A stretch of 64,000 nt of DNA, taken from assembly GCF_002113885.1 (NCBI RefSeq), contig NW_018408489.1, forward strand, positions 215,800-279,799, written 5' to 3'. The notes below the pieces were generated by a model that was given only the letters and a program-made list of their open reading frames with translations, made no database searches and was not told where the DNA came from. This document shows, one piece after another, positions 4,501 through 36,600 of the stretch. The position numbers were made by a program, and so were the translations under genes. Source of the stretch: Mizuhopecten yessoensis (Eukaryota). The first letter of the stretch is position 1. Every line of letters starts with the position of its first letter.

Positions 4501-5505
4501 GTTCAGTAACAGTGTTTTCTAACCCATATTTCAACAAAATTCTATGTAGATGTGAGTTTGGATTTAGATGTAACATGTCTTGATTTATATCACCTACCAG
4601 GACTACTTCCCTTTGCAGATCAATAATATTATTTAGGTTAATATCTAGCCTGTCCCAGTAGCCAACGAGAGAGTTAGGGGGTCTATATATACAGCCAAGA
4701 AAAATAGGTTTATTATGGGTAGTTACTTCAGTCCATATTAATTCAAGATCATCTGTCTCAAGGTCAGGTCTACGTTTAATATTAATATTATGTTTAGTAT
4801 AAATCAGAACTCCGCCACCATAATTATCTCTATCCTTTCTAAAAATATTACCAAAGTTTTTCAAAGATACAGCACTATCAGGAATTGAATTATCAAGATG
4901 AGTTTCAGAGACGCACAGTATATCGTATTCGGAAAATTCAGCATCAAGAATATGAGTTTTGTTCCTTAACGAACAAATATTGATATGACAAATAGAAATA
5001 AAATCTAGGTGGATGTGGGAGTTGGGTGGACCGGGGTTCGGGTGAATATCACCGCATATGGATAGTATTAATAATAAAATAAAAATGTAGTGCAAATTCA
5101 GAGAGAATAGATTCAGAGAGACACTAACGATACATAAACATTTATAAAGTAGTGAGTCATTCCCTGCCGTTACAGCACCAAGGTAGTTTGTTGTTTTATC
5201 CATTGTCAAAAAGGAAACGAATATGTAGAAAATACATCCTGGTAGAGTAAGAGCAGAGAATGACACAGATAGGTTTTAAGGAAGATACACGGGATATACC
5301 AATATTTAAGTTGTGTAAACAAGATTGACATGCATAACTGTTTATATTCTGAAAACACAATTTGCCTTGGCGAAGTAAACACATTGACAAATGAGAACAA
5401 AAAACAATATAAAAATAGATGATAAACATAAACATTATTTACATTAACCTTTAGGATCCATATAAAAAATGACTGTGATACAAAAATGAAATGTAAGAAA
5501 AAACA
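1523..5505 (-). mobile_element. CR1/L2-group LINE, recent insertion, no ORF1 visible
   Basis: 15-bp TSD gttgttaatattcat at 1508-1522 and 5506-5520; short (tgaaa)n tail; long open ORF2. Confidence 0.85.
1844..5266 (-). CDS. LINE ORF2: 2A-like motif, APE endonuclease, reverse transcriptase, C-terminal Cys/His motif
   Basis: GDIHPNPGP; APE motifs CHINICSL, SETHL, YRPP, GDIN, SDHCPV; RT motifs DISKAFD, GVPQGSVLGP, LFADDT, HLG; CLC..EDCDHFFFHC. The true start codon is uncertain. Confidence 0.95.
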   Translation of the reverse strand: MSFSALTLPGCIFYIFVSFLTMDKTTNYLGAVTAGNDSLLYKCLCIVSVSLNLFSLNLHYIFILLLILSICGDIHPNPGPPNSHIHLDFISICHINICSLRNKTHILDAEFSEYDILCVSETHLDNSIPDSAVSLKNFGNIFRKDRDNYGGGVLIYTKHNINIKRRPDLETDDLELIWTEVTTHNKPIFLGCIYRPPNSLVGYWDRLDINLNNIIDLQREVVLVGDINQDMLHLNPNSHLHRILLKYGLENTVTEPTRITSQTSTSLDTILTNNVNFIKNTIVHPPSCSDHCPVSADLKFKTLKKHAYKKTLLYFNNTDFDGANEYLKSIDWNLLLQGDIENMNSLLTDKILTAIDLFVPHKTVTIRPNDKIWMTNGIRLKIRQRNRQHSKAKLHNTPSSWAKFRSIRNEVISLVREAKEKYLSKLQSSLIDKTIPPGKWWRIAKSVMNLKNKNENDSPLIINGELKIHPIDKAESFNDYFTSISVTEKNADDLPPDCPRPRHSFSTIDITEQDILDQLDLLNTNKPSGPDSIPPKFIKGVSQSLVKPLYLLFNKSISTGKLPNRWKNAHVTPIYKGKGDKSDPSNYRPISVTPIFSKLFEKNVFKYMFNYLSRYNIISKNQSGFLPKDSTVYQLLIIYDEIVKHLDKGKEARMIFCDISKAFDRVWHDGLIYKLKKYGICNNMLEWFTSYLHDRQQRVVIDGYKSNWKTLQAGVPQGSVLGPFLFLLYINDIGDELASNFKLFADDTSLYGLIEGDRQECANILNDDLRKISIWARTWGIIFNPDKTVALLFSRRVDSETLHPNLYFDESSIINVSNHKHLGLFFNSKANWSNHINYIYEKAYKRINILRMLKYKIDRKSLETIYITFIRPILEYANIIWANCTQNECSVLESIQLEAARIILGLRRGTSHAILYRESGFITLNRRRHLHQNITFYKIYNRKCPSHVYDIIQPYINDNTDNYHLRHNRIFDVPIPRTQLYNASFFPKLMSEWNNPTCLYPTMTSIGSIKRDFLHSDEMDSQPQCTDIFKYNGDRKFNITLCQLRNCASNLNSDLFESHLIDTPACLCSSPVEDCDHFFFHCTLYTNQRQILLNSISAFNDIIPLNTQTFLYGCQRLDINMNISILEMVKRFVKDTRRFN

Positions 5506-5821: not shown

Positions 5822-6010
5822 CAGGTTATCCTACACGGACCCAGTCGACCCACCCCTAATTTGCTGAGCGTTAAGCAGGAGTAGAAACTACCATTTCTAA
5901 AGACTTTGGTATGTCTCGGCCAGGGGACAGAACCCAAAGCCTTCCTCACAGGTGCGAACGCTCAACAAATGGCCAAAAGTGAGGCAATGTCAAGGGAGAC
6001 ATTAGGGGGG
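5822..6010 (-). mobile_element. tRNA-derived SINE fragment
   Basis: gactttggtatgtctcggccaggggacagaaccc..gcgaacgctcaac resembles the reverse complement of a tRNA-like head plus SINE core. Confidence 0.55.
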
Positions 6011-10000: not shown

Positions 10001-10199
10001 AAATTTCATTTCTCAACAAACACTGTGCTGTTTTGTAATAATACATAGGATACTATCAAATCTGTACTACTGGTCCAAGTATCAGTGTATGATAATGTAT
10101 ATCCAGAAATGGATGACCGGATATCTAAGACGACAACATATCTTTATTCTAATAATATGAGCTCCCATTTCCTAATAAAAGGCGAATGGCGATATACAC

Positions 10200-18376: not shown

Positions 18377-19985
18377 GGCAGGGGCGCTTCACTTTACCAT
18401 AATGGTGAAATGAAAGATTTTAGCATTTTTTCCCCCTATTTGACTTGTTTAAACCAATTATGGTTTAGATTACATCAGTTTGATGTCCTGAATATGAAAA
18501 TCACAAAAATTATGTCTGGGGTAGAGAAAATCAGGGTGGGGCAGGGGCCCTTCACTTTACCATAATTGTGAAATGATGGGTTTTAGCATTTTTTCTATTT
18601 AACTTTTTTAAACCAAATCCATTTAGGTTATATCAGTTTGATGTCCTGAATATGAAAATCACAAAAATTATACCTGGGGTAGAGAAATTTAGGGTGGGTC
18701 AGGGGCGCTTCACTTAACCATAATGGTGAAATGAAGGGTTTCAGCAATTTTTTTTCTATTCTACTTTTTTAAACCAAATCCATTTAGGTTACATCAGTTT
18801 GATGTCCTAAATATGAAAATCACAGAAATAAGGTCGGGGGTAGAGAAATTGAGGGTGGGTCAGGGGCGCTTCACTTTACCATAATGGTGAAATGAAGGAT
18901 CTGAGCTTTTTTTTTCTGTTTGACTTTTGTAAAAAAAATCTGGTTTAGATAACATCAGTTTGATGTCCTGAATATGAAAATCACAAAAATTATACCTGGG
19001 GTAGAAAAATTGAGGGTGGGGCAGGGGCGCTTCACTTTACCATAATGGTGAAATGAAGAATTTGAGCATTTTTCCCCCTATTTGACTTGTTTAAACCAAT
19101 TATGGTTTAGGTTACATCAGTTTGATGTCCTGAATATGAAAATCACAAAAATTATGTCTGGGGTAGAGAAAATCAGGGTGGGGCAGGGGTCCTTCACTTT
19201 ACCATAATGGTGAAATGATGGGTTTTAGCATTTTTTCTATTTAACTTTTTTAAACCAAATCCATTTAGGTTATATCAGTTTGATGTCCTGAATATGAAAA
19301 TCACAAAAATTATACCTGGGGTAGAGAAATTTAGGGTGGGTCAGGGGCGCTTCACTTAACCATAATGGTGAAATGAAGGGTTTAAGCATTTTTTTTTCTA
19401 TTCTACTTTTTTAAACCAAATCCATTTAGGTTACATCAGTTTGATGTCCTGAATATGAAAATCACAGAAATAAGGTCGGGGGTAGAGAAATTGAGGGTGG
19501 GTCAGGGGCGCTTCACTTTACCATAATGGTGAAATGAAGGATCTGAGCTTTTTTTTTCTGTTTGACTTTTGTAAAAAAATCTGGTTTAGATTACATCAGT
19601 TTGATGTCCTGAATATGAAAATCACAAAAATTATACCTGGGGTAGAGAAATTGAGGGTGGGGCAGGGGCGCTTCACTTTACCATAATGGTGAAATGAAGG
19701 ATTTGAGCATTTCCCCCCTATTTGACTTGTTTAAACCAATTATGGTTTAGATTACATCAGTTTGATGTCCTGAATATAAAAATCACAAAAATTATGTCTG
19801 GGGTAGAGAAAATCAGGTTGGGGCAGGGGCCCTTCACTTTACCATAATTGTGAAATGAAGGGTTTTAGCAAAAAAAATTCTATTTGTCTTTAATAAACCA
19901 AATCTGTTTTACTTTACTTCAGTTTGATGTCCTGAATATGAAAATCACAGAAATTAAGTCAGGGGGTAGAGAAAATCAGGGTGGG
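18377..19985 (+). repeat. Left subterminal array: 10 units of 158-163 bp
   Basis: Unit starts at 18381, 18544, 18702, 18863, 19024, 19186, 19344, 19505, 19665, 19826. Confidence 0.95.
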
Positions 19986-20770
19986 ACTGACAGGTATAGT
20001 ATAGTGTGATACAGGACTGACAAGTATAATGTAAGACAGGACTGACAGGTATAGTATAGTGTAATACAGGACTGACAGGCATAGTATAGTGTAATACAGG
20101 ACTTACAGGTATAGAATAGTGTAATACAGGACTGACAAGAAAAGTATAGAGTGATACAGGACTTACCGGAATAGTATAGTGTAATACAGTACTGACAGGT
20201 ATAGTATAGTGATGAAGTCTAGTTTGATACAAGACTGACAGATATAGAATAGTGATGAAGTCTAGTGTAATACAGGACTGAAAGGTATAGTATAGTGTAA
20301 TACAGTACTGACAGGTATAGTATAGGGATGAAGTCTAGTGTAATACAGGACTGACAGGTATAGAATAGTGATGAAGTCTAGTGTAATACAGGACTGACAG
20401 GTTTAGTATGGTGTGATACAGGACTGACAAGTATAGTGTAATACAGGACTGACAGGTATAGTATAGTGTAATACAGGACTGACAGGTGTAGTATAGAGTG
20501 ATACAGGACTTACAGGTATAGTATAGTGTAATACATGACTGACAGGTCTAGTATAATGTAATACAGGACTGACGGGTATAGTATAGTGATGAAGTCTAGT
20601 GTGATACAAGACTGACAGATATAGAATAGTGATGAAGTCTAGTGTAATACAGGACTGACAGGTATAGTATAGTGTAATACAGGACTGACAGGTATAGTAT
20701 AGAGTGATACAGGACTGACAGGTATAGTATAGTGATATGGTCTATAATGTAATACAGGACTGACATGTAG
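19985..20770. repeat. ~30-bp minisatellite (acaggactgacaggtatagtatagtgtaat)n
   Basis: Directly visible tandem repeat. Confidence 0.95.
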
Positions 20771-20951
20771 AGTAAAGTGATGGATAACTATTTATACAAT
20801 TGTTGTGTAAAAAGAAACCAACACAACCATGCTATCAGGGTCTGGTCATCCCAAAGAGGACAGAGTTTCTAAGTCATAACATGGAAACTTTAAAGATCGC
20901 TACTTTTATAACAATAAATACAATAGTTATTGTTAAGCATGCTTCTTTTAA

Positions 20952-21966
20952 GGATGTACACCTCTGAGAAGTCAAAAAATTCCTGTATTCAACTTTTTTT
21001 CTTATATGGATTTTTGGAAAAAGGAGTTAATGGCATGGTAGAAAATGCAAAAAAACGGTATGTCGGTGTGTTTGTTTTTGTGCTATTATCGGCCAAAGAT
21101 ACCAATTTAACACAACATGCGATTTTAGGTGATTTTTTGGGTTTTGACCATTTGCGGAACAAATTCATACAATTTCTTTCAAGTGTGTTATCAGATATGT
21201 ATAAATGTTTGTAGAATTGATAAAAATATTATTTTCTTTTAAATTATGGAAGTAAAATTTCTTAATCTTATTCTTTTAACTCAAAAAGCCGATTTTAGTT
21301 ACCCCTACCCCCTATTTTTTAATGAAAAAATACTAATTTTTTACCATTTTTTGCAGATTAAACGCTTGATATCAAAAGTTCTGGTATTCAACTTTTTTTT
21401 AATATTTAATGAATTTAAAGAAAATGTTTTTCTTTTTCTAAAACATCCATAAAAATGGGGGGTCGGTGTGCTTCTTTTTTTGTCCCATTATCATTTGTGT
21501 TATTTTTTACCTTTTTCGGGGTCAAAAATCAAAAGTGCTTCAGTTACACAAAATATGTAAAAAAAATATCAATAATGTATAATTTTCCAGTTTGTTGCAT
21601 ATTATTTTTATCATATTAAACATTATAAAGTTGTACAGCAAAATTGAACCTGCTATTATTAAAAATGACGACAGAATGACAACTTAAGTGATCAATCTAG
21701 TGTCAAAAAAGGTGAATCTTTTGCCTTTTTTGTAGCCCAAGAAATACACATTTATACTCATTTTCAAAATGGACGCCGAATTGGTATTTTTTCGAAATTC
21801 TTGTAAAAAACAGTTCTACAAGCAACAGACATCTAGTTTTTTGACATATTTTTCAGATGCGTGTTTGCTAATAAACTTGATCATAATTTGTTAAATATTA
21901 CAAAAACCCGTTACACCAGATCAAAACGAGACTTGAACGTGATTGAAACCTCAGAAGAGTACATCC
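20952..21966. mobile_element. Kolobok-type non-autonomous element inside the Ginger element
   Basis: TTAA TSD on both sides; TIRs GGATGTACACCTCTGA / TCAGAAGAGTACATCC. Confidence 0.75.
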
Positions 21967-22075
21967 TTAATGATAATATTGCTATGATTGCTTAAATATC
22001 ACCATATGTTGAGGAAATGTATTCTCAGGATATTTTATGTTTCTCTCTTGATAAGGGTTCTTATTTACTTTTTAG

Positions 22076-24172
22076 GTTAATTCCAAAAATGGAAAGAACA
22101 ACTTCAGAAGGAAAATTAAGCCTTATTTCCTTGAAGATGGCACACTTTTCTTCAATCATAGATCACTTGGTGCCTTAAGAGTTATTAAGGAACATTATCA
22201 GGATGCAATTTTAAGAGGATGCCATTCCAGCAATCCATCGGGTCATCAAGGAGTAAATAGAACTGGGAAAAAAATTGCAGAAAGATACTTTTGGCCTGGT
22301 ATGACCAGTGACATCAGAGAATTCATCAGATGTTGTGATGAATGTCAGCGTCAGAACAACTTGAGAAAGATCTCTGCACCACTCCATCCGACTCAGGTCA
22401 AAGACGAAGCATTGGCTATGGTTGGCATGGATTTAGTTGGACCTCTGCATGAGACAGAGAATGGCAACAAATACATAGCTGTACTGAGGGAGTATTTTAC
22501 AAAATGGCCAGAAGTTAAGGCAATCCCAGACAAGTCAGCAGTACAGATAGCAGAGATCATAACAGAGATCATCTGCCGTGATGGAACGCCAAAAACAATA
22601 CTTACAGACCAAGGCAGGGAATTTTGTAATGCAGTTGTGCCAGCGTTTAAACATAGACCACAAAGTGACAGCAGCCTACCATCCCCAGATCAATGGTTTA
22701 ACAGAACGCTATAACAAGACACTTTGTGATTCATTAGTAAAATATGTGAATGAAGAGCAGAACAACTGGGACAAATATCTACAAATGGTTGCATTTGCTA
22801 CAAGAACTTGCGTCCAACGCTCTACAAAACAGACTCCTTTTTACTAGTTAGAACGGCTGTTCTTCCAATTCAACTGGACATCCCCACATCATTGGGTGAA
22901 CCGTCAGACACCTTGTCAAATGAAGACTGGGAAGAAGTGATCACAGACAGAACAACATAATTTGTCCAACTCTTAAAAGTCAGAGAAAAGGCCATATCTT
23001 CCATAGCTGATGCTCAGAGGAAGCAGAAGACATATTATGACAGAAATCAGAAGAAAATGCCACTTCAGCTAGGTGATCAAGTTCTCATAAAAAATCCAAA
23101 AAGGCACAACAGAAAAGGAGACAAGATGGCCAAGAGTTTACTGGACAATACAAAGTGATTGAAGTTAAAAGGAAAAGGTGTGTATAAGCTAGAAGGCAGG
23201 AAGGCTTCACAGAACATTCAAAACTTGCGCAAGTACATCACACCTAAGAAGTCTCCCAAGATACCTACAAATACACCTACCATGGTTGCTGCCAGTGGGA
23301 AAAGTCTTGTACCACTGATCAACATCAAAACCAGGATCCCTGCCTGCGGAAAACCATCACGTTCGCTGCCTTCTTTCCGCGGAAATTCAGAGCAGGAAAG
23401 GGTCACCGCTAAACGATCCTTAAAAACCTCCATCAAGATCCCTTCAAGTGAAAAGACAAGAGAAAAGGGAAAAATGAAGAAGCCAAATCACACTCTGCAT
23501 GATATCAGACAGAAAGATTCCCACAAAAAAACCTCCAAATACCCCCAAAAAGACTCCAGACCAGATAAACTCCAGAAAGACAGAACCCAGTATCAACAAG
23601 AAACCTGCAGTAAAGACCCTCCCCAGCAGAATAGATTCATAAGGAAAGATGAAAAGACAGACACCCCTTTGATCACTTTCCTCAACGAGATGCCACACTC
23701 CCAGATCAAAGACCTCATCAAGAGATGCTCATCGTATCATCTGCTCAAACCAAACAACATTTCTAGTATGGTTTTAGAATCAGGCCAATCGCCAACACCG
23801 TCTTTGTATTTGAAACATCAGCAACAATCCCAAGAGGACAGGTGTGTCCAGTTTCTTTCAAGACTATCGTGGTGATAGTCTTGAAAGAAACTGGACACAC
23901 CTGTCCTCTTGGGATTTGCTATTATCAGCCCATATGATGTGGTGCCAGGACTGATGGTTGCTTCTTCAGTTGTGCTTGAGTGCCTCAATCAAAAGTCAGA
24001 TCCAGATTCGGTCATAGATACACTTAAAACACTGCCTTTAACTACACCAAAGCTAAAACGAAAAATGCCACTTCTATCGAGATTGACCCGTGGACGGTTA
24101 GGAATAGGGACTACGCAGCTAACAAAGGAAGATTTCAAAACCTTAGCACCAAGGAAATGGGTCAATGGCCAG
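22076..24172 (+). pseudogene. Ginger1 integrase exon: HHCC zinc finger, DDE core, GPY/F-like motif, linker, start of Ulp1
   Basis: CHSSNPSGHQG..YFWPGM..CDEC; GMDLVGPL; ILTDQGREF; YHPQINGLTERYNKTL; FTGQYKV. Frameshifts near 22635 and 23140, stops near 22845 and 22958; begins at an AG acceptor. Confidence 0.85.
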
Positions 24173-26964: not shown

Positions 26965-27415
26965 ATATTTATTGTCGAATGAATACCAAAGTATACGTGT
27001 TGTTTTGTGTGAATTTATATTTATTGTAGAATGAATACCAAGTATAAGTGTTGTTTTGTGTGAATTTATATTTGTTGTAGAATGAATACCAAAGTATAAG
27101 TGTTGTTTTGTATGAATTTATATTTATTGTAGAATGAACACCAAAGTATAAGTGTTGTTTTGTATGAATTTATATTTATTGTAGAATGAACACCAAAGTA
27201 TAAGTGTTGTTTTGTTTGAATTTATATTTATTCTAGACTAAATATCAAAGTATAAGTGTTGTTTTGTGTGAATTTATATTTGTTGTAGAATGAATACCAA
27301 AGTATAAGTGTTGTTTTGTGTGAATTTATATTTATTTTAGAATAAATATCAAAGTATAAGTGTTGTTTTGTGTGAATTTATATTTATTCTAGAATAAATA
27401 TCAAAGTATAAGTGT
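26965..27415. repeat. 51-bp minisatellite, about 9 copies
   Basis: gaatttatatttattgtagaatgaataccaaagtataagtgttgttttgtgt repeats. Confidence 0.9.
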
Positions 27416-28500: not shown

Positions 28501-29566
28501 TACATCAAATTGAAGTAAATTTTAAGAAAAAGAATTGAAAAAAAGTTGTCAGAATAGCAATCGTTCATTTCACCATGGGGTGGTTCATATTACCATAATG
28601 GTAAATATGAACCGCGGTTCATTTCACCATGGCCTTCATATTACCATACTACACCGGTTTTCTTTTTAAATTATTGAATTATTAGCCCTTCAGGTTTGTG
28701 ATAGACCATAGGAGCCTGAAGTTCTGTCAATAATGAATAATAATAGTAATACACAAAAAATACCCCTAATATGCTTAAAAAATAGACAGGAGTGCAACGG
28801 CAGATTTACCCCTCTTCGTTTTCAACGAAGTTTTCTCGCCCAAAACTGAAAAATTCCACAGAAACCAAAACTCCTATGCAGTCTAGGATGACTACTAATG
28901 TACACTACAGATCGTTTTGTGGAACAACATGCTTGCTGACCTGTTACATAGCCCGTTTTTTAGAATTCTCCTTTCAGCGCCCACTGACACGGAATCCATG
29001 CGGTGAATCCGTTTCCGGTCGTACGGAGTGAATATACAGGTAATTATTGTAATATGTTTTCTACTCGAAATTAAATATAAACCAACAATAGTAGGTACTT
29101 TTAACTTTTTTTAAAAATAACTGCACATTCAATTTAATTAACAAATGTACATTAGAGTTGTGTATCATTCTATTTAGAAACATTATTAATCAGGGGCAGA
29201 TAACTCTAATACCCGTTTAGTTCCGTTGCGGGAAATTCAAATTTCAAAGTATCGGGAAGATTTTAAAACATTTCAGAAGCCGTCAACATGAGTGACAAGC
29301 ATCTTGATGTTGCCTTGTGGTATGTTTTTAACTGAAAAGTAGAATTANAAGATCAGACACATGAATAATAAATGCGAGTTAGTTTAATTTGTATGTGAGA
29401 AAATAACAGGCACATGTTTTTTGGAGGGAAATCTGTCAATGCTTTTTGCAGGGAAACTGTCAATGCTTATCAGGCCCATTACACTGCCGATTGAGCTATA
29501 TAGTTGTAAAGACCTATACCATTTGTTTGTTTGTTTGCTTGAGTGGTTTTACGTCCGCTTTACTAC

Positions 29567-29693
29567 CATAGGAGCCTGAAGTTCTGTCAAAAATTAATAA
29601 TAACAGTAATACAAAAATACTATAATATGCTAGGTATTTTTTTCTATTTCTGTTTAATATTATTAATTTTTGAAAGAACTTCAGGCTCCTGTG
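29567..29693. mobile_element. 127-bp MITE sharing the P-like element's termini
   Basis: CATAGGAGCCTGAAGTTCT / AGAACTTCAGGCTCCTGTG; 8-bp TSD TTTACTAC at 29559-29566 and 29694-29701. Confidence 0.9.
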
Positions 29694-30013
29694 TTTACTA
29701 CCTAGTAATTTGGTAAATATAATCAAGCAGACGCCAATACCAGCTCCATCAACCCATCTGAAATAGGGTTTTAGAGCTATTTTGACATGATTTTCGTTCT
29801 AAAAGACAAAAAAAAATCGTTTGCATTTAAAATATCATTTTAACACTACCTGAACTGAAAAAAGCATAAAAATATATGTAATTTTACATTTGTGAAAATA
29901 AATTATACTTTTTACTGTATGCTTTTCGAAGTGAAGTATGAAATCTTTGGAAATATACAGGTAGGTCTTTACAGCTATATACATTGTAGCGCAATACGCA
30001 TAGTGTACTGTAC

Positions 30014-30914
30014 CTGGTTNAGTTGGGCTAGTAATAAGACTTTGAGATGTTCTGGTGTTGTTTCTGATGAAGATATGTTTTCAATAATTTTCACCATGTC
30101 ATTATGATCAGGTTCAGAGAGGTTGATACATGTCATATTGGATTCATCCAAGTCATTCTGTTCATGTCCATTTTTGTTTAAATTATTAGGATCACTTGGA
30201 GTGACTTTTGCCTTTTTATCGGTTTTGGAATCATTCATGTTGTTTTCCATCTTTTTCCGCTTTCTTGATCTACTAATAACTTCATAATTTATGCATCTTT
30301 CACAGTGTTCATTTTTTGCACACAATGGTAAAATCACTCTGCATGACTTTGACCTGTAGATGGTTTTCATGGAGTTTTCATCATGAACATAGCTCCAAGT
30401 TTCCTTTATGACATCACAGGGGCGTTGTTCACTGATGTATGATCCTTGGCACATAGACACAGTTTGGGCAAGTAAAACAAAACCATTAATAGTTTCCTGG
30501 TCAAAATTCAAACGATAGCCCATGCTGAAAACTTTATTACGTATAGTAATTTTTGCAGTTTCTCCTAAAGAAAGAATACAATACTGCAGGCTTCCATTTA
30601 TAATGGTGTTAAAGGGACACTTGACTTCCACAAAGTTATTGTTTGTTTGAGACATTTCACAAAAATCTGGTAAAACCACTTTTTCAACACTTCTTGGACG
30701 CTCCATTATAGATGTGAAAATAATGTGTCGTTTTCCTTTCTCGTACAAAAATGTTGACTTCACATCAAAGATGACTTGAACTAGTCTTGATAGCAGTACT
30801 TGAGTTGGTGGACAGACGTTGTTATCTCTGTAGAATTGCGTACACACATCATACATCCGATTCAGCCGCACAAACTTTTTGCTGTCATCTGTTCGTTGGA
30901 AGTGAATTGCCAAC
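30014..30914 (-). CDS. Exon: RFX-like winged helix plus Cys-rich region, probable N-terminal part of the P-like transposase
   Basis: AG acceptor at 30916-30915; (W)LAIHF..V..MY..NN..P..LV..IF..V..L..G..I pattern; RSKSC..CERC; NLS RSRKRKK; interrupted by an N at 30020; no catalytic domain visible. Confidence 0.55.
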
Positions 30915-31166
30915 CTGTAGAGAAAATAATTTATAATATGTATAATAAATTCAAACAGCATACTTTCGAGTTTCGATGAAGGCCGGAATAATAATTGGTA
31001 AAAAAGTATTCTGTTAATGGCACATTTTGTTTGTTTTATATCACATTTTCTTCTGATAAATGACATATGATATTAAGAGGAATGTATTGTTATATGATAG
31101 AGATCGAATTCAGGAGAAATTCACAAAATTTGGATATCTAATGTTTTGTTTATATTTGTGTTATAG

Positions 31167-34100
31167 GAAGATTTTACAAGAGATTATCCAAAAAGAAGAC
31201 AGCAAAAATGTTGCTGTAACTGCAACAACGGGAATGGCCAGTCTCCATCTAGGATCCAATGCAACAACCTTACACCACTGGGCCGGGATTTTAGATGGGA
31301 GACACTCCATTGAAAAACTTCAAGAGTTATTTGACAATGACGACAGCTACTCAGAAGCCAAAAAACGGATACAGATCACCAAATGCTTAATCATTGATGA
31401 AATAAGCATGTTGTCAGCCAAAATTTTCAACATGGTGGAGTCTGTATGTCGGCTTGTTAAGAAAAATAATCAAGCCTTCGGGGGTATTCAGGTAATTATT
31501 TCTCTAGCAAAAATGAGCCATGACTGGTAATTTGTTTGTCAAAATCATGTCTACAAATATTACCAATATGCATTTTTGTCCCGCCATCATCAAATCTCCC
31601 TCTATGTGTGGTCTGTCTGTCCATTCATACTTAAACAACTATTGTGATGAATTGTTACAATAATACATTATTTTAATACTGTTGACATAACTCCATCCAA
31701 CAGATAAGCGATAATATCAAATTTACATAGTACTAATGATTAATTTACAATGGTGGGCTCAAAGGTCCTTCCTGTATGTTTTATTATCAAATTTGTAAAT
31801 AACCCCTTAATGAAAGCAACTTTTTAATATTTTGTTTCAATATTGTAATTTTTCATTTATAATATTTTTCAGGTTTTAGTGTCTGGGGATTTTAAGCAAC
31901 TTCCTCCTGTTCCAAACTACAGATTAGGGGATGAAGGGAAATACTGTTTCGAAAGTGAGATTTTCCAGCAAACATTTCATCATCATATTAACTTACCCAA
32001 GGTATGTGTAATTTTGTTATACATTTTTACTTCACCAAAGCCCAAGTGAGCTTTTGCAATCTATTGCCATCCATCATCTGTCTGAAACTTTATTTTAACC
32101 ATTTCTCCTCAAAAACTATGAAGCCAACTTCAACCAAATTTTGTAGGAAGTATCAATCTATAAAAATCTTTTCACACATCAGCTATCTGAGGATTCTTGA
32201 ATTTGTTATATAGCATATACATGTACTACAAAACTGAAAACTTGCAAAGAAAACCCCCCAAAAAGGTCTTATTGGAAACAAATGACCTTGAACCATATTT
32301 TAAGGTCATGGGGTCATATCTTGTGAAATACTCAAACAAAAATGCCTAGTCATTATATTTCGCATTTTGGCAATATTATATATGGCAAATAGCTTGGTTT
32401 GATATAGTGCTATATTTCTTCTTCTTTTTTAAGAAATAAGCCTTGAACCATATTCAATGCCACAGTATTCCATTTTATTGATACACCCAACAACCTCTTC
32501 TGAGAGCAGCTAAGGACATTAATTGATTAGTTTATGAGTGGAAGGTAGCCAGGTTGCATGGCAGGCCGCTTCTCTTAAATTAATACATGGAAAATGATCC
32601 CTGTAATGCATGTTATAGTGACGAAGCATGCAAGTATGTACATGTATTTACAAGGTAAATGTTAAAGCTAATGGCTTCTTAGCTTGCATAGATGATTTTG
32701 TAATTCCTTTGTTCATTTGTTCACAGGTAATGAGACAACATGAGGAAGACTTAATCAAAGCTGTAAATGAGTTATGTAACGGTTCTCCATCAGCTGAAAC
32801 ACTGCAGCTGATGAAAAGTCTTGACAGACCCCTGGACCCTGGTGATGATCATACAGAAATTGTGAGCTTTTTGGAACAAACTTTGATGCCAGCTTTGTGA
32901 ACCAAGAAATGTTGGAGGATATGGAAGGAGAAATGCATGTGTTCAAAGCCAAAGATGAAGGTTTGTACTTAATTACCAGTACCTTCCTGGGGTGAAGTTT
33001 CTCAAATTATTGATCTTCAAATATCAAATAATAGTTTGAAGTGGATAACCATGTGAAAAGTTTTGAACATTTTGTAAAACATCTATAAAGGTCTAAAGTA
33101 TTTAAATGTGTTTTTTAGCAACAATAGTAAGCTGGAATATAGTGATTATTGAAAAAAATAAAGACAAAGGGCTAATTTGAACATCCTTAGCCTATTTGTT
33201 TTTACCTCCAGTTATATGTGTTCAGGTGACAGATACAGGTCCCCTGGGTCTCTTGTTTAAGTTTTGTTGATTTCATTTTTTCCTGATCATTTTATATTCA
33301 TGTATATATATGTATTCTTTCAGGTTATCTGAAGCTTTTACGAGGAAATGCGGTTCCTAAAACACTGACTGTAAAGATATGTGCTCCAGTCATTCTTTTG
33401 AAAAATATTGGAAACGGTCTATTCAATGGAATGAGAGGAAAAGTCCACAGTATATCGAAGGAAAATCTACCTATTATTGATTTCCATGGACGAATGATCA
33501 CAGTGAGTCCTGTAAGATTTGATGTTTTTGATGCACAACAGCAAAAATCGTTGGCGTCGCGAAGACAAATTCCACTCATGCTGGCATTTGCGTTGACAGT
33601 TCATAGAGCCCAAGGTCAGACAATAGAAAAACTTGAAATTGACTGTTATTCTTTTTTTGCACCGGGACAGATGGGTGTTGCTGTTGGCAGAGCTAGAAAC
33701 AAAACTGGGTTGTGTATCAGGAACTTTAACAAAAAAGCAGCCAACCTCAAACATCCTCAGTGTGTTTATGACTTTTACGATAATGTAGAACAATTCCAAA
33801 ACCGCGTAGATGACTGTTGTTGGGCTGATATTGTGTGTGAGGATCTATTACCTCTGGACACTGAACCCAGCTCGTCACAGACCTATGAGACTGATCCAGA
33901 GGAACCAGGTCCATCTGAGTTACCTGCAGAAGCAACACCAAAATCAACAGTTGAATCCCCATTTAGCCTGGAAGAGTTTTTCCTTCACAACAAAGATGCT
34001 AAATTCACGTACAATATTCAATCAGATGTAATCAAGAAATTAAAAGGTCACATGAACTGGATTTATGAAATAATTACTGACATCTTAAAAGAAAGTCCAA

Positions 34101-35212
34101 AAACAAGACAGAAGTGGACCACAGCTTTCGATCAACTGAACAATTTCTTAGTGAGTGACAACCACATCACCAGCATCAAAACACTCTTTTCTGTGGACAC
34201 AATTACAAAAGAAAACAACAAGCTCTCTTCCAAACTGGCTTTCTGGCTCATGGACAAACTAATTGAAAATGAGGCCAAAAAAGTGCAACAAACACAGGAA
34301 GAGGAACTGCATCAGGAGACCCCACCTCCTCAACTTTCACAAGCTGCCAAAGGAAAAATTAGATATATTGCTGGTGCATGTGTTAACAAAATTGGGACAA
34401 GGCTGCAAAAGTCGGTTGTATCAAAACTAAGTCAATGCACAGCCAAGAGCAAAATAAGTAGGAAATTGGACTACAGGAAACAACGAATGCTGAAAACCTT
34501 CAGAATAAATGAGAGTGAAGTTGACGATTCAGAACCCAGCATGGCAGAGATAGATTTCAAACAAGGGTTGTCACATGGATTATATGTTGTCAGTGATGAT
34601 GTGTTTAATTTCTTCATTAAACTCCATGATGTGGTGCAAAGCACAATAACCGTGGCTCAATTTCATCTGCATTTTGACAACATTCACCTGAATTGTAGGT
34701 CTGCAGTTGATGCCAGTGACCTTCTTCTCGACAAATGGATAGATTTGTTTGGGGAAATCGATGACACACAAATGGAAGATGAAATATTCTTGAATTTAGT
34801 TATGGAGCTGTACAAAGACATTACAGAATATTTCTTGAAAGTGTCCATAGCAGAGGCCTTGAAAAACTTTAAAGCAACTGTGCCAAGGAAGAAAAAACAA
34901 GCGTTTAGGGTCAAACTCACTGCTCTTGGCGAGAAAAAAAATCCCAAAAAACAAAAACTTGAGGAAATAAATACAGAACAGGCATCATACATTTGTCATT
35001 TATGTAATGAAATTTGTGACTGGGATCCGGCAGAGATTGGGGATGAGAGCATTGCCTGTGACACGTGCAATTGCTGGTGTCACTATAAATGTGTTGACAT
35101 TGAAGGAACTGAAACTTTCTTGAAAAGAAAAAATGCTAAGTGGTATTGTCCAAACTGCTTTAAGGGGAAAGGCAAGGGAAAAGGCAGGGGGAAAAAAAGT
35201 AAAAAGAATTAA
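31167..35212 (+). CDS. Spliced Pif1-family helicase + P-transposase-CTD-like domain + PHD finger (exons 31167-31491, 31873-32001, 32727-32960, 33324-35212); one frameshift near 32865; Walker A exon not found
   Basis: Helicase motifs TATTGMAS, LIIDEISML, FGGIQV, GDFKQLPPV, VMRQ, AFALTVHRAQGQT, VAVGRAR; RYIAGAC and GLYVVSDDVFNFF; PHD CHLC..IACDTCNCWCHYKC..WYCPNC; canonical GT-AG introns. Confidence 0.9.
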
Positions 35213-35857
35213 GTGTAAGAAATACATGTCATTTATATTTCTTTGTTTTTTTTGTAAACTCATAGATTCTACTGTGTCCAGTTTAGGTCAAAGGTTGAAT
35301 GAAAATCACAGTTATGGGCTAAACAAGAATGGGGGTCCATGCATGATTGAATATAAATTTGTATTAAGATTTTGTATTGATGCGACATTGGTTGTAGTTG
35401 AGTATTGGCTCTACATATATGTCTTTTCTGGGTTTTTTTTGTTACAAATACACCAGTCATAAAAGGATCACAAATGATATTTTATGCTTGATGAGATTAT
35501 CAGGTTGTTCAACTGCCTAACATAACTATAAACTATGTCAGATTTGGTTGAATATGTATCTACCACATATAACCCCTTCCTGTCTTTATTTTAATATATT
35601 CTGTAAAATATAGTGTACTCTTTCTTTTTGATTTTTTTTTCACTGAGCAGTGGGCACTGTAACTCCATAGGAGTCAAATATAATGTTTATAATATTAACA
35701 AGAGTAACAAATAGAAATATCAGAAATGTAAAGTACTCCAGTCACAGAACTGATCTGCTAAATAAATTATTGACTGAAAAACGCTATGTTTTCTCGTTTT
35801 TTTTAAAAACTGTTTCCCATTTCATGGTCTAATTCTACTTTTCAGTTAAAAACATAC

Positions 35858-35889
35858 CACAAGGCAACATCAAGATGCTTGTCACTCAT
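35858..35889 (-). CDS. Putative first coding exon MSDKHLDVAL(W) inside the right TIR (mirror copy at 29288-29319 on +)
   Basis: caacATG context; GTATGT donor; phase 2 matches the 30914 acceptor and creates the W of the RFX-like WL motif. Confidence 0.55.
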
Positions 35890-36600
35890 GTTGACGGCTT
35901 CTGAAATGTTTTAAAATCTTCCCGATACTTTGAAATTTGAATTTCCCGCAACGGAACTAAACGGGTATTAGAGTTATCTGCCCCTGATTAATAATGTTTC
36001 TAAATAGAATGATACACAACTCTAATGTACATTTGTTAATTAAATTGAATGTGCAGTTATTTTTAAAAAAAGTTAAAAGTACCTACTATTGTTGGTTTAT
36101 ATTTAATTTCGAGTAGAAAACATATTACAATAATTACCTGTATATTCACTCCGTACGACCGGAAACGGATTCACCGCATGGATTCCGTGTCAGTGGGCGC
36201 TGAAAGGAGAATTCTAAAAAACGGGCTATGTAACAGGTCAGCAAGCATGTTGTTCCACAAAACGATCTGTAGTGTACATTAGTAGTCATCCTAGACTGCA
36301 TAGGAGTTTTGGTTTCTGTGGAATTTTTCAGTTATGGGCGAGAAAACTTCGTTGAAAACGAAGAGGGGTAAATCTGCCGTTGCACTCCTGTCTATTTTTT
36401 AAGCATATTAGGGGTATTTTTTTTGTATTACTATTATTATTCATTATTGACAGAACTTCAGGCTCCTATGGATAGACGTAAGAAGGAGAATTTATATTGC
36501 TTGGTGATTGTTTAAAAAGTGTAGTTTGGTATACGACTAAAAAGGGTTTAACAATTGTGGTTTTACAATTAGTCAGGTATATATAGACACTTTTGGTGAA

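Follow-up and report, generated by a model that had tools for sequence, protein, structure and literature searches.

The window, a stretch of 64,000 nucleotides from the Yesso scallop Mizuhopecten yessoensis, contains one copy of a cut-and-paste transposon of the P superfamily (Table 1). The element ends in CATAGGAG and is bounded by a target duplication of 7 bp. Between its terminal inverted repeats it carries two genes on opposite strands, a Pif1-PHD helicase gene on the plus strand and an RFX-type/TNP-like transposase gene on the minus strand. The acceptors from which the two gene bodies diverge, at 30914 (minus) and 31167 (plus), lie 252 nt apart, are both phase 2 and are both used by RNA contigs; the spacer between them is crossed only by unspliced contigs (records 16 and 22). 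A short coding exon (caacATG...TG/gtatgt) is present in both arms, at 29288-29319 on the plus strand and 35889-35858 on the minus strand. The initial annotation had described this exon, the two phase-2 acceptors and the absence of a start exon between them, and all are confirmed in the sequence.

Table 1 Features of the transposon copy, in positions of the window (slashes mark splice junctions)
Feature	Position	Strand	Basis or remark
Left target-site duplication, GATAGAC	28700..28706		Read directly in the sequence
Left terminal inverted repeat proper, ~339 nt, terminus CATAGGAG	28707..29044	+
Left-arm extension, repeating in inverted orientation and without mismatch the unique inner sequence of the right end	29045..29347	+	Carries second copy of the short exon, 29288-29319
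127-bp miniature element, same family and termini, inserted within the element	29567..29693		Flanked by 8-bp duplication TTTACTAC
Single N within transposase gene	30020..30020		Sister copy C5180 has 1,526 bp more at the matching place
Transposase exon 2	30021..30914	-	Acceptor ag/G at 30914, phase 2; open reading frame, RNA joint
Spacer between acceptors, 252 nt	30915..31166		Intronic for both genes, without start exon
Pif1-PHD exon 2	31167..31491	+	Phase-2 acceptor; Pfam PIF1 5.8e-13, profile positions 45-142
Pif1-PHD exon 3, GDFKQLPPV motif	31873..32001	+	GT..AG joints 31491/31873 and 32001/32727 in RNA contigs
Pif1-PHD exon 4	32727..32960	+	Frame broken in the window and in C5180
Pif1-PHD last exon	33324..35212	+	Open reading frame; RNA contigs; stop codon 35210-35212
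Transposase short first coding exon, MSDKHLDVAL, TG/gtatgt	35858..35889	-	Position, phase and peptide type conserved in five molluscs
Conserved block GCGGGAAATTCAAA	35936..35949	-	47-60 nt upstream of short-exon ATG
Right terminal inverted repeat proper	36133..36470	-	Inner part is the non-coding leader exon
Right copy of target-site duplication, GATAGAC	36471-36477		Read directly in the sequence

The inner 94 nt of the repeat contain eight CpG dinucleotides (observed/expected ratio 1.42, GC 0.49), compared with ratios of 0.2-0.6 in the gene bodies, and in the left repeat they end in ACAG/GTAA; in the arms a CpG-rich stretch is found upstream of the inward-facing ATG exon. The termini of related elements conserve the motif CA(C/T)AGGAG. 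Target duplications measure 7-8 bp in the sister copy and the related elements: GATAGAC in the window, TAGAAAC in the near-identical sister copy C5180, and CCTCACC, CTCTAAAT and ATATAAAC in related elements. Short copies resembling the 127-bp miniature element occur by the dozen across the genome.

Membership of the P superfamily is established by a TNP-like RNase H domain in the sister copy (PF21787, 7.1e-16, on a 439-aa open reading frame of C5180), by the 7-8-bp target duplications that accompany the terminal inverted repeats, and by the CA(C/T)AGGAG termini. The TNP-like catalytic core is not present in the window as assembled, in which an N stands at 30020. Homologues carry PF21787/PF21788; the latter, the GTP-binding insertion TNP-like_GBD, is present in some of them, and the scallop reading frame has no match to it at E <= 0.1. 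A THAP zinc finger was not matched in Pfam at E <= 0.1 or 10, and the N-terminus is instead predicted to be an RFX-type winged helix. THAP is typical of P and THAP9, and the superfamily is defined by its catalytic domain, not by THAP. The element is not a Helitron or Helentron: the helicase exons match PIF1/AAA and PHD only, and the element has repeats and a target duplication.

Expression was followed in RNA contigs from four scallop runs of four studies, which cannot reveal strand, transcript start or rare isoforms. The helicase introns are GT..AG in these contigs, and an extra G behind 32865, found in all four runs, keeps the frame of exon 4 open. The last exon encodes the C-terminal part of the helicase, a long further region, a PHD finger (Pfam PHD 1.9e-6) and a basic tail, and has homologues in many molluscs. 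The Walker A motif (PIF1 profile positions 17-39) is found in the first exon of C5180 and in RNA; the PIF1 exon of the window matches profile positions 45-142. In RNA this Walker exon, which supplies the start codon, precedes 31167: in runs X1 and X3 the 29 letters that overhang ahead of 31167 are identical to the end of the C5180 Walker exon, and contigs in the same two runs pass from at least 82 nt of the repeat directly into its leader. The Walker exon was not found in the window as assembled; a genome search located it only on C5180 and on the older copy C4, with a weak partial match on C5005.

These contigs run against the earlier proposal that a single repeat-borne exon serves both genes, since the RNA ahead of 31167 is the Walker exon and not the MSDK exon. 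Splicing of the left-arm short exon to 31167 would yield a Walker-less helicase isoform (MSDKHLDVALW-KILQ...); both sites are phase 2, and the join is in frame as assembled. We regard such an isoform as very unlikely: X1 and X3 have the Walker exon at this place, a strand-switch joint from 35858 to 31167, although detectable, is absent from the RNA, and the product would have no ATP-binding loop.

On the minus strand, the frame of transposase exon 2 is open from 30913 down to the N and encodes the remainder of the RFX-type winged helix and a Cys-rich region. The exon and its acceptor are homologous in five species, and the ag/G followed by Leu is conserved. A contig of 2,383 nt (X1 record 1) joins this acceptor, with GT..AG borders on the minus strand, to a donor at 36138, where the leader exon in the right repeat ends in ACAG/GTAA. 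The joint skips 5,223 nt, comprising the entire helicase gene, and bears out the initial annotation in its claim of a long first intron that holds the whole Pif1 gene in antisense. Its more specific version, a 4.9-kb intron that begins at the short exon, is favoured by conservation in five molluscs, a coral gene model and a transcript-like contig (below); the check proposed for it, a junction from 35858 to 30914, found 30914 in use from 36138, and the 35858 joint was not seen in the four runs. Donor-like sequences at the inner end of the repeat also occur in Tegillarca granosa and Saccostrea echinata. The leader of the 36138-30914 transcript contains an in-frame stop, and translation could start only at an internal Met. 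A conserved internal Met as regular alternative start was considered and dropped, as it is not conserved in Saccostrea cucullata.

The short exon is 32 nt long, and its final Trp codon is completed by the G at 30914. It lies 244 nt inside the right repeat in the scallop and recurs in five mollusc species. Each element has it once and on no strand but that of the transposase, at 212-244 nt inward of the right repeat and always in the form ATG, 8-9 codons and TG/GTR. The pattern arises in 3-6% of shuffles per element, and its right-side occurrence is far above chance. Contig L067, termed transcript-like solely because the introns of genomic copies are absent from it, joins the exon to exon 2 (MNSLFDAALW/LSLNY) behind a leader of 93 nt; in a coral gene model, too, the Trp codon is split in this way, and plausible acceptors precede the exon in scallop, oyster and clam. 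No MSDK exon occurs in the scallop RNA contigs of the four runs, the sole transposase 5' junction seen there skips it, and none of the mollusc genome gene models seen includes it. Exons were searched singly, with the contig-derived natural protein P0075 representing the joined form; when the first 330 residues of P0075 were used in a word search for further full-length models with the short exon, the query alone was returned. Taken together, the conservation, the acceptor, L067, the coral model and the predicted helix across the junction suggest that the short exon is the true transposase start.

This helix is helix 1 of the AlphaFold model of the transposase N-terminus (pLDDT 84), which spans the exon junction; in the predicted fold of the L067 contig protein the short exon encodes its first half. 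The model matches the DNA-binding domains of RFX1 (Foldseek E 4.3e-4, TM 0.81 and r.m.s.d. 1.9 with 1dp7) and RFX5 (E 9.2e-4, TM 0.80 with 8zjr), with the next match at E 0.42 and all other winged helices at E > 0.4. The profile PF02257 (RFX_DNA_binding) reaches 16.1 bits, below its cut-off of 27, and does so only for the protein with the short exon; searching PDB sequences with a profile of the N-terminal alignment gave nothing meaningful. The transposase N-terminus starts with W-L-x-x-(N/H)-(Y/F), as RFX domains do. Its RFX-like character, first suggested by the WL motif completed across the junction, is borne out by the predicted structure.

The layout of the element is shared beyond the window. 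C5180 and C4 (88-92% alike) have the same gene order and orientation as the window copy. A layout that runs from the left repeat through the Walker exon, the transposase in antisense, the helicase from exon 2 on and the short exon to the right repeat is found in independent assemblies of S. cucullata, S. echinata, T. granosa and Haliotis rufescens, with repeats of 303-350 nt and the same left/right asymmetry, and the Walker exon adjoins the left repeat in the two sister copies and in these four species. The first intron of two RefSeq models, P0008 (oyster) and P0031 (abalone), spans the transposase. A Mytilus locus (L071) was left out, having no detectable repeats in the examined range. In several molluscs the repeats are 94-100% alike between arms and the target duplications are intact; the family is recently active in these species. 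An internal inversion or a mis-oriented contig had been offered as the other explanation for divergent bodies without first exons, and two single-N joins do lie inside the element. This explanation is extremely improbable, because order and orientation are the same in C5180, C4 and the four other mollusc species, and RNA junctions cross the supposed breakpoints at canonical splice sites.

The left arm of the window copy departs from this layout. The inverted arms (28706-29347 and 35830-36471) are 642 nt each and 100% complementary, whereas the arms of C5180 and C4 share only the repeat proper (~339 nt); at the matching left place these copies have a different exon, that with the helicase start codon and Walker A. 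The 303-nt extension stops exactly at a single N (29348) and is present in no other copy or species compared. In the same assembly, a single N in C5180 is surrounded by a duplication artefact. The Ns of the window copy, at 29348 and 30020, were left unfilled, and only the length difference from the sister copy is reported. The statement that each repeat holds the exon is accordingly right for the sequence of the window but not for the element, since C5180, C4 and the four other molluscs are asymmetric; the presence of one and the same first exon at either end is probably a peculiarity of this assembly. The extension is an artefact of assembly or else a rearrangement confined to the window copy; it is not a feature of the family.

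The second of these options, in which the window copy truly has symmetrical 642-nt arms and a rearrangement such as template switching in gap repair replaced the helicase first exon, falls somewhat short of even odds. The copy would then be a defective derivative with two transposase-type starts and no Walker A. The arms are fully identical as assembled; a perfect inverted repeat would break contigs at its inner edge and could explain the N at 29348, and the N at 30020, where C5180 is longer, could mark an internally deleted derivative, of a kind common among P elements. The confinement of the Walker exon to C5180, C4 and, weakly and in part, C5005 in the genome search also fits. Against it stand the lack of symmetric arms in every other copy and species compared, the occurrence of an artefact at a single N elsewhere in the assembly, and RNA that carries window-type letters in exon 2 behind the Walker exon, even if this RNA could stem from a third copy.

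The expressed copy is not exactly the window copy. The RNA resembles the window at 30780-30821 and 31324-31482 and has letters found in neither assembled copy (the extra G behind 32865, 32912A and 34796C). Some unusual RNA joints (between 36004 and 36133 on opposite strands, and an overhang at 35995) were set aside as gene evidence; they are consistent with short, internally deleted copies in which the right arm stops at arm positions 436-477.

The best explanation of these observations, to which we assign a probability of roughly 0.8, is that the family carries two genes mutually nested on opposite strands. The helicase gene would start inside or beside the left terminal repeat, with a leader and a first coding exon bearing Walker A, and would be spliced over the whole transposase body to 31167. 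The transposase gene would start with the non-coding leader in the right repeat, include the 32-nt coding exon as an option, and be spliced over the entire helicase body to 30914. As each gene is spliced across the body of the other, each first intron would contain, in antisense, all further exons of the other gene. The window as assembled lacks the helicase first exon and has a mirror of the inner 303 nt of the right end in its place. Transcript contigs of both genes contain inner-repeat sequence, and the identical repeats would most likely give both genes one and the same inward-facing promoter. The earlier idea of a shared repeat promoter thus remains plausible, although the same exon is not shared. 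Start sites are unreadable from contigs, and these may reflect transcripts that start inside the repeat or read-through from outside, being compatible with both.

A different arrangement for the transposase would place an internal promoter upstream of the short exon, at GCGGGAAATTCAAA, and leave the repeat-to-30914 transcript non-coding or regulatory. Similar blocks stand at the same distance from the ATG in S. cucullata, T. granosa and S. echinata, giving four species with the scallop, and the sole repeat-leader junction skips the exon without a usable upstream start codon. The L067 leader, however, is longer than the block-to-ATG distance, the short exon has plausible acceptors ahead of it in scallop, oyster and clam, and donor-like sequences occur at the inner end of the repeat in three species; the arrangement is rather unlikely. 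The block itself may act as an internal promoter element or may bind a protein. An E2F site is not claimed, as the strict E2F pattern matched the clam only.

Mutual nesting might in addition form a built-in control circuit of opposed promoters, antisense transcription over more than 6 kb and a splicing switch, a speculative proposal that we consider improbable. If true, simultaneous firing would cause transcriptional collision or double-stranded RNA, limiting expression as copy number rises, and after splicing the mature mRNAs would retain hardly any complementarity. Whether the 32-nt exon is included or skipped would determine if the transposase has its start codon and an intact RFX-type domain, a switch analogous to the germline-only removal of the P third intron. 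Directly testable are how two genes are coordinated from identical promoters, whether antisense nesting and exon skipping regulate transposition, and why a P-type element carries its own Pif1 helicase. PIF1 of Drosophila promotes the synthesis of long tracts when double-strand gaps are repaired (bioRxiv 10.1101/554550); by analogy, the Pif1 gene may be linked to the gap repair that restores P elements after excision. The layout also matters for annotation, in which automatic gene prediction breaks up or shortens both genes; P0008 and P0031 are the only two models seen that span the nesting.

The usual description of a cut-and-paste transposon is that of a single gene flanked by two repeats. 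In the literature searched, which did not include Repbase reports and so does not prove novelty, no P-type element with a Pif1 gene or with such nesting was found described. The scallop family resembles the Drosophila P element and THAP9 in its TNP-like RNase H domain, 7-8-bp duplications, terminal inverted repeats and many short internally deleted derivatives. In the Drosophila P element a single gene lies between 31-bp repeats, the N-terminus of its product is a THAP zinc finger, and the full-length transposase depends on alternative splicing of the third intron (PMC7776569); transposase production in the scallop family may, by analogy, also depend on alternative splicing. The scallop family differs in its ~339-nt repeats, its RFX-type winged helix, its second, Pif1-PHD gene and the mutual nesting.

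Galileo and 1360 generate 7-bp target duplications. They combine long terminal inverted repeats with a P-type transposase (PMC3573991), but carry one gene only, with neither a helicase nor nesting, whereas the scallop family has both. MuDR of maize has two inward genes that start from ~215-bp terminal repeats and are alternatively spliced (PMC3440606). The likeness would lie in two genes directed inward from terminal repeats; the MuDR genes are simply convergent and their bodies do not overlap, whereas each scallop body lies inside the first intron of the other, and the MuDR transposase is a MULE, unrelated to the scallop TNP-like enzyme. The helicase of Helitrons is a fusion with a Rep nuclease, and these elements have neither terminal inverted repeats nor target duplications. 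Helitrons and Helentrons also carry a Pif1-family helicase (PMC4067079, PMC11417382); the scallop element, in contrast, has PIF1/AAA and PHD only, with terminal repeats, duplications and a separate DDE-type transposase.

The RFX domain, here predicted at TM ~0.8 and r.m.s.d. ~2 Å, belongs to a transposase and not to a transcription factor. Among host genes, nesting places exons in introns of the opposite strand, and rare mutually interleaved pairs are catalogued in the Drosophila annotation. In the scallop family both partners belong to one mobile element and apparently use the same repeated promoter, and, unlike the host gene comparison, the nested layout is conserved across bivalves and a gastropod.

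The element in the window is a transposon of the P superfamily that carries a second gene. Its termini conform to CA(C/T)AGGAG, as in all elements compared (scallop copies and related molluscs), and target duplications of 7–8 bp accompany the window element, a sister copy on contig C5180 (loci L031 and L003; approximately 99% identical), a 127-bp miniature copy and the related mollusc elements. In C5180, the minus-strand gene contains a 439-residue open reading frame with the TNP-like RNase H domain of P-element/THAP9 transposases (PF21787, 7e-16). The plus-strand gene encodes a Pif1-type helicase, with PIF1 profile positions 45–142 matched in the exon at 31168–31491 and a PHD finger at its end. 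Identity as a Helitron was considered and dropped, as a Rep domain is absent and repeats and duplications are present. The miniature element has the same termini, lies inside the large element at 29567–29693 and has its own 8-bp duplication, TTTACTAC; dozens of copies of approximately 150 bp, each composed of two 70–80-nt arms, are found in the genome. Upstream of the element, at 27221–27411, a 35-nt AT-rich unit (TTTATATTTATT...) is repeated several times and pairs weakly with 29047–29081 in the left arm.

Features of the window element and of related mollusc elements. Homologous helicase proteins led to the loci on which the scallop exons were mapped; coordinates for these four species are locus coordinates.
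Element	Extent	Terminal repeats	Termini	Target duplication	Walker exon	Antisense transposase	Helicase exon 2 onward
Window	28707–36470	28706–29347 / 35830–36471, inverted, 642 nt each, complementarity 100%	CATAGGAG	7 bp, GATAGAC, both flanks
Saccostrea cucullata (L065)		~303 nt, 99%			10001–10129	13207 down to 10485	from 13537
S. echinata (L070)		339 nt			5863–5958	9660 down to 6865	from 10368
Tegillarca granosa (L066)		~350 nt			4960–5034	8645 down to 5162	from 10036
Haliotis rufescens (L069)		337 nt			10001–10099	16220 down to 13593	from 16998

The sequence features reported in the initial annotation are all present. Each arm bears an inward-facing short exon, comprising caacATG, the peptide MSDKHLDVAL and the donor TG/gtatgt (slashes mark exon boundaries), at 29288–29319 on the plus strand and 35889–35858 on the minus strand. 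CpG is abundant in the innermost 94 nt of the repeat (eight CpG, observed/expected 1.42, against 0.2–0.6 in the gene bodies). Open frames begin directly after ag/G at 30914 on the minus strand and, for the Pif1-type frame, at 31167 on the plus strand; both acceptors are phase 2, and the 252 nt separating them contain no start exon. Two single Ns lie inside the element, one at 29348, where it coincides precisely with the inner edge of the left arm, and one at 30020, where C5180 is 1,526 bp longer. A segment of 115–116 bp in the third helicase intron (32249–32363) is missing from C5180.

The helicase first exon lies at the far left of the element. In C5180 the two arms have only approximately 339 nt in common, and beyond this stretch on the left are 143 nt containing an ATG and 32 codons with a Walker A loop (…GQCGTGKTFLL), ending in AA/gtaagt. 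This Walker exon is phase 2, compatible with the acceptor matching 31167, and matches PIF1 profile positions 17–39, dovetailing with exon 2. An older copy on contig C4 (88–92% alike) agrees with C5180 in its left repeat, its Walker exon and its antisense transposase. Across the 988-Mb assembly of 82,659 contigs, the Walker exon was found in C5180 and C4 only, with a weak partial match on C5005.

The left end of the window element differs from that of both these copies: the place of the Walker exon is held by a mirror copy of the inner 303 nt of the right end, extending as far as the N at 29348. Symmetrical 642-nt arms do not characterize the family, the arms measuring approximately 339 nt in C5180 and 303–350 nt in the other molluscs, and this part of the original observation falls away while the features themselves stand. 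We estimate a probability of about 60% that the left arm of the window element is an artefact or hides sequence at the N; a real rearrangement private to this copy is a serious, if less favoured, alternative. In the C5180 copy, a stretch of approximately 510 nt occurs twice, once before and once after a single N at position 2000 (L031, 1491–2667). This duplication is a local assembly artefact, and artefacts of the same kind may be present at the single-N joins of the window.

Contigs from four runs of four studies (Logan contigs; run type guessed) were aligned to 30480–36471, and their canonical spliced joints indicate that the runs contain RNA. Helicase introns 31492–31872, 32002–32726 and 32961–33323 are spliced out with GT..AG borders, and one 3,334-nt contig from run X3 links helicase exons 2 to 5 and continues to 35980. 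The proposal of one first exon shared by both genes proved wrong: what precedes 31167 in contigs from X1 and X3 is not the MSDK exon but 29 letters that match the end of the C5180 Walker exon exactly. Contigs of these two runs also pass without a break from at least 82 nt of inner repeat, through ACAGGTAA, to the Walker-exon leader, so repeat sequence is part of the helicase transcript and the donor there is unused.

On the minus strand, a 2,383-nt X1 contig joins 36138 to 30914 with GT..AG borders and seven shared letters at the joint, skipping 5,223 nt, and extends 1,920 nt past 30480 on the left side. The transposase leader is thus borne by the repeat and spliced across the helicase gene. 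In this contig the repeat leader is placed directly on transposase exon 2 and the short exon is skipped. No joint with 35858 or 35900 was found in the four runs across 30480–36471, where contigs show presence only. Because of an in-frame stop in its leader, the skipping transcript could start only at an internal methionine, and helix 1 of the protein would be lost.

Several letters of the RNA distinguish it from the assembled copies. It matches the window, not C5180, at 30780–30821 and 31324–31482. All four runs have an extra G behind 32865 relative to both window and C5180, with which the helicase frame stays open; without it, exon 32727–32960 is frame-shifted in both assembled copies. With 32912A and 34796C the RNA differs from both copies, so its source is another copy or other alleles. 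Strand-switch joints near 35995–36004 fit short internally deleted copies. Short deletion derivatives (C4772, C4995, C979 and C2332; compare window 35995–36133) comprise the 339-nt repeat and approximately 100–140 nt of the right inner region, without the short exon; they reach high depth in the RNA contigs and are the likely source of such joints.

The same nested order is found in C5180, C4 and four other mollusc species (see table), and in RefSeq helicase models the transposase lies inside the first intron (3.4 kb in oyster P0008, 6.9 kb in abalone P0031). The interleaved antisense layout first proposed, with genes apparently driven from both ends, is real and conserved, and its recurrence in these species excludes the alternative that the scallop assembly contains an internal inversion or a mis-oriented contig here. 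In H. rufescens, the full helicase gene is followed by partial tandem copies of it (19489–22772), which lengthen the element to approximately 17.5 kb. The coral Dendronephthya gigantea (L068, 10001–19420) has the same gene pair with convergent gene bodies; nesting is therefore not universal for this pair. The coral helicase gene consists of a single ORF (849 residues) and starts 39 nt from a 696-nt inverted repeat (100%); this repeat does not include exon 1 of the coral transposase model.

Conservation of the short exon is confined to the right side of the element. In all five mollusc species, exactly one ATG followed by 8–9 codons and TG/GTR occurs within 450 nt of the right repeat, on the transposase strand and 212–244 nt from the repeat (MSDKHLDVAL, MSNNFGASV, MSTNIDIAA, MVENTNVIS and MSTHLDILA); shuffling each element yields the pattern in 3–6% of cases, and it is absent from the opposite strand. 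Exon 2 opens with ag/G and a Leu codon in all five, making the split codon Trp. The joined form is seen in the transcript-like Logan contig L067 (2,460 nt, one 740-residue frame; MNSLFDAALW/LSLNY), which has no introns at places where genomic copies have them, and the coral gene model joins …SSIL and TG/gtaagt to ag/G CTT at the same phase and position. A block, GCGGGAAATTCAAA, lies at 35936–35949 (mirror 29228–29241), 47–60 nt upstream of the short-exon ATG, and has equally spaced counterparts in S. cucullata, T. granosa and S. echinata; a strict E2F-type pattern for it fits the clam only.

The structure predicted for the N-terminus of the L067 protein P0075 (alignment of eight homologues, mean pLDDT of 84) comprises a helix (residues 3–14), a hairpin, two helices and a wing, with the exon junction within helix 1. 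The best Foldseek match is the X-box-bound DNA-binding domain of RFX1 (1dp7, E of 4e-4, TM of 0.81 and r.m.s.d. of 1.9), followed by RFX5 (8zjr, TM of 0.80), and every other winged helix has E > 0.4. The Pfam RFX model matches only the form with the short exon, below threshold (16 bits versus 27). At the level of the predicted fold, the suggested RFX-like WL motif therefore holds.

Together, the transposase and helicase genes are mutually nested. The full transposase probably begins at the short exon, and the same promoter in both repeats appears to drive both genes. More speculatively, antisense primary transcripts and exon skipping might regulate the element, by analogy with the third-intron control of the P element (PMC7776569). 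No description of this transposon family or of its nested layout was found in the literature searched. The closest known two-gene, repeat-driven layout is that of MuDR of maize, whose genes are simply convergent (PMC3440606).
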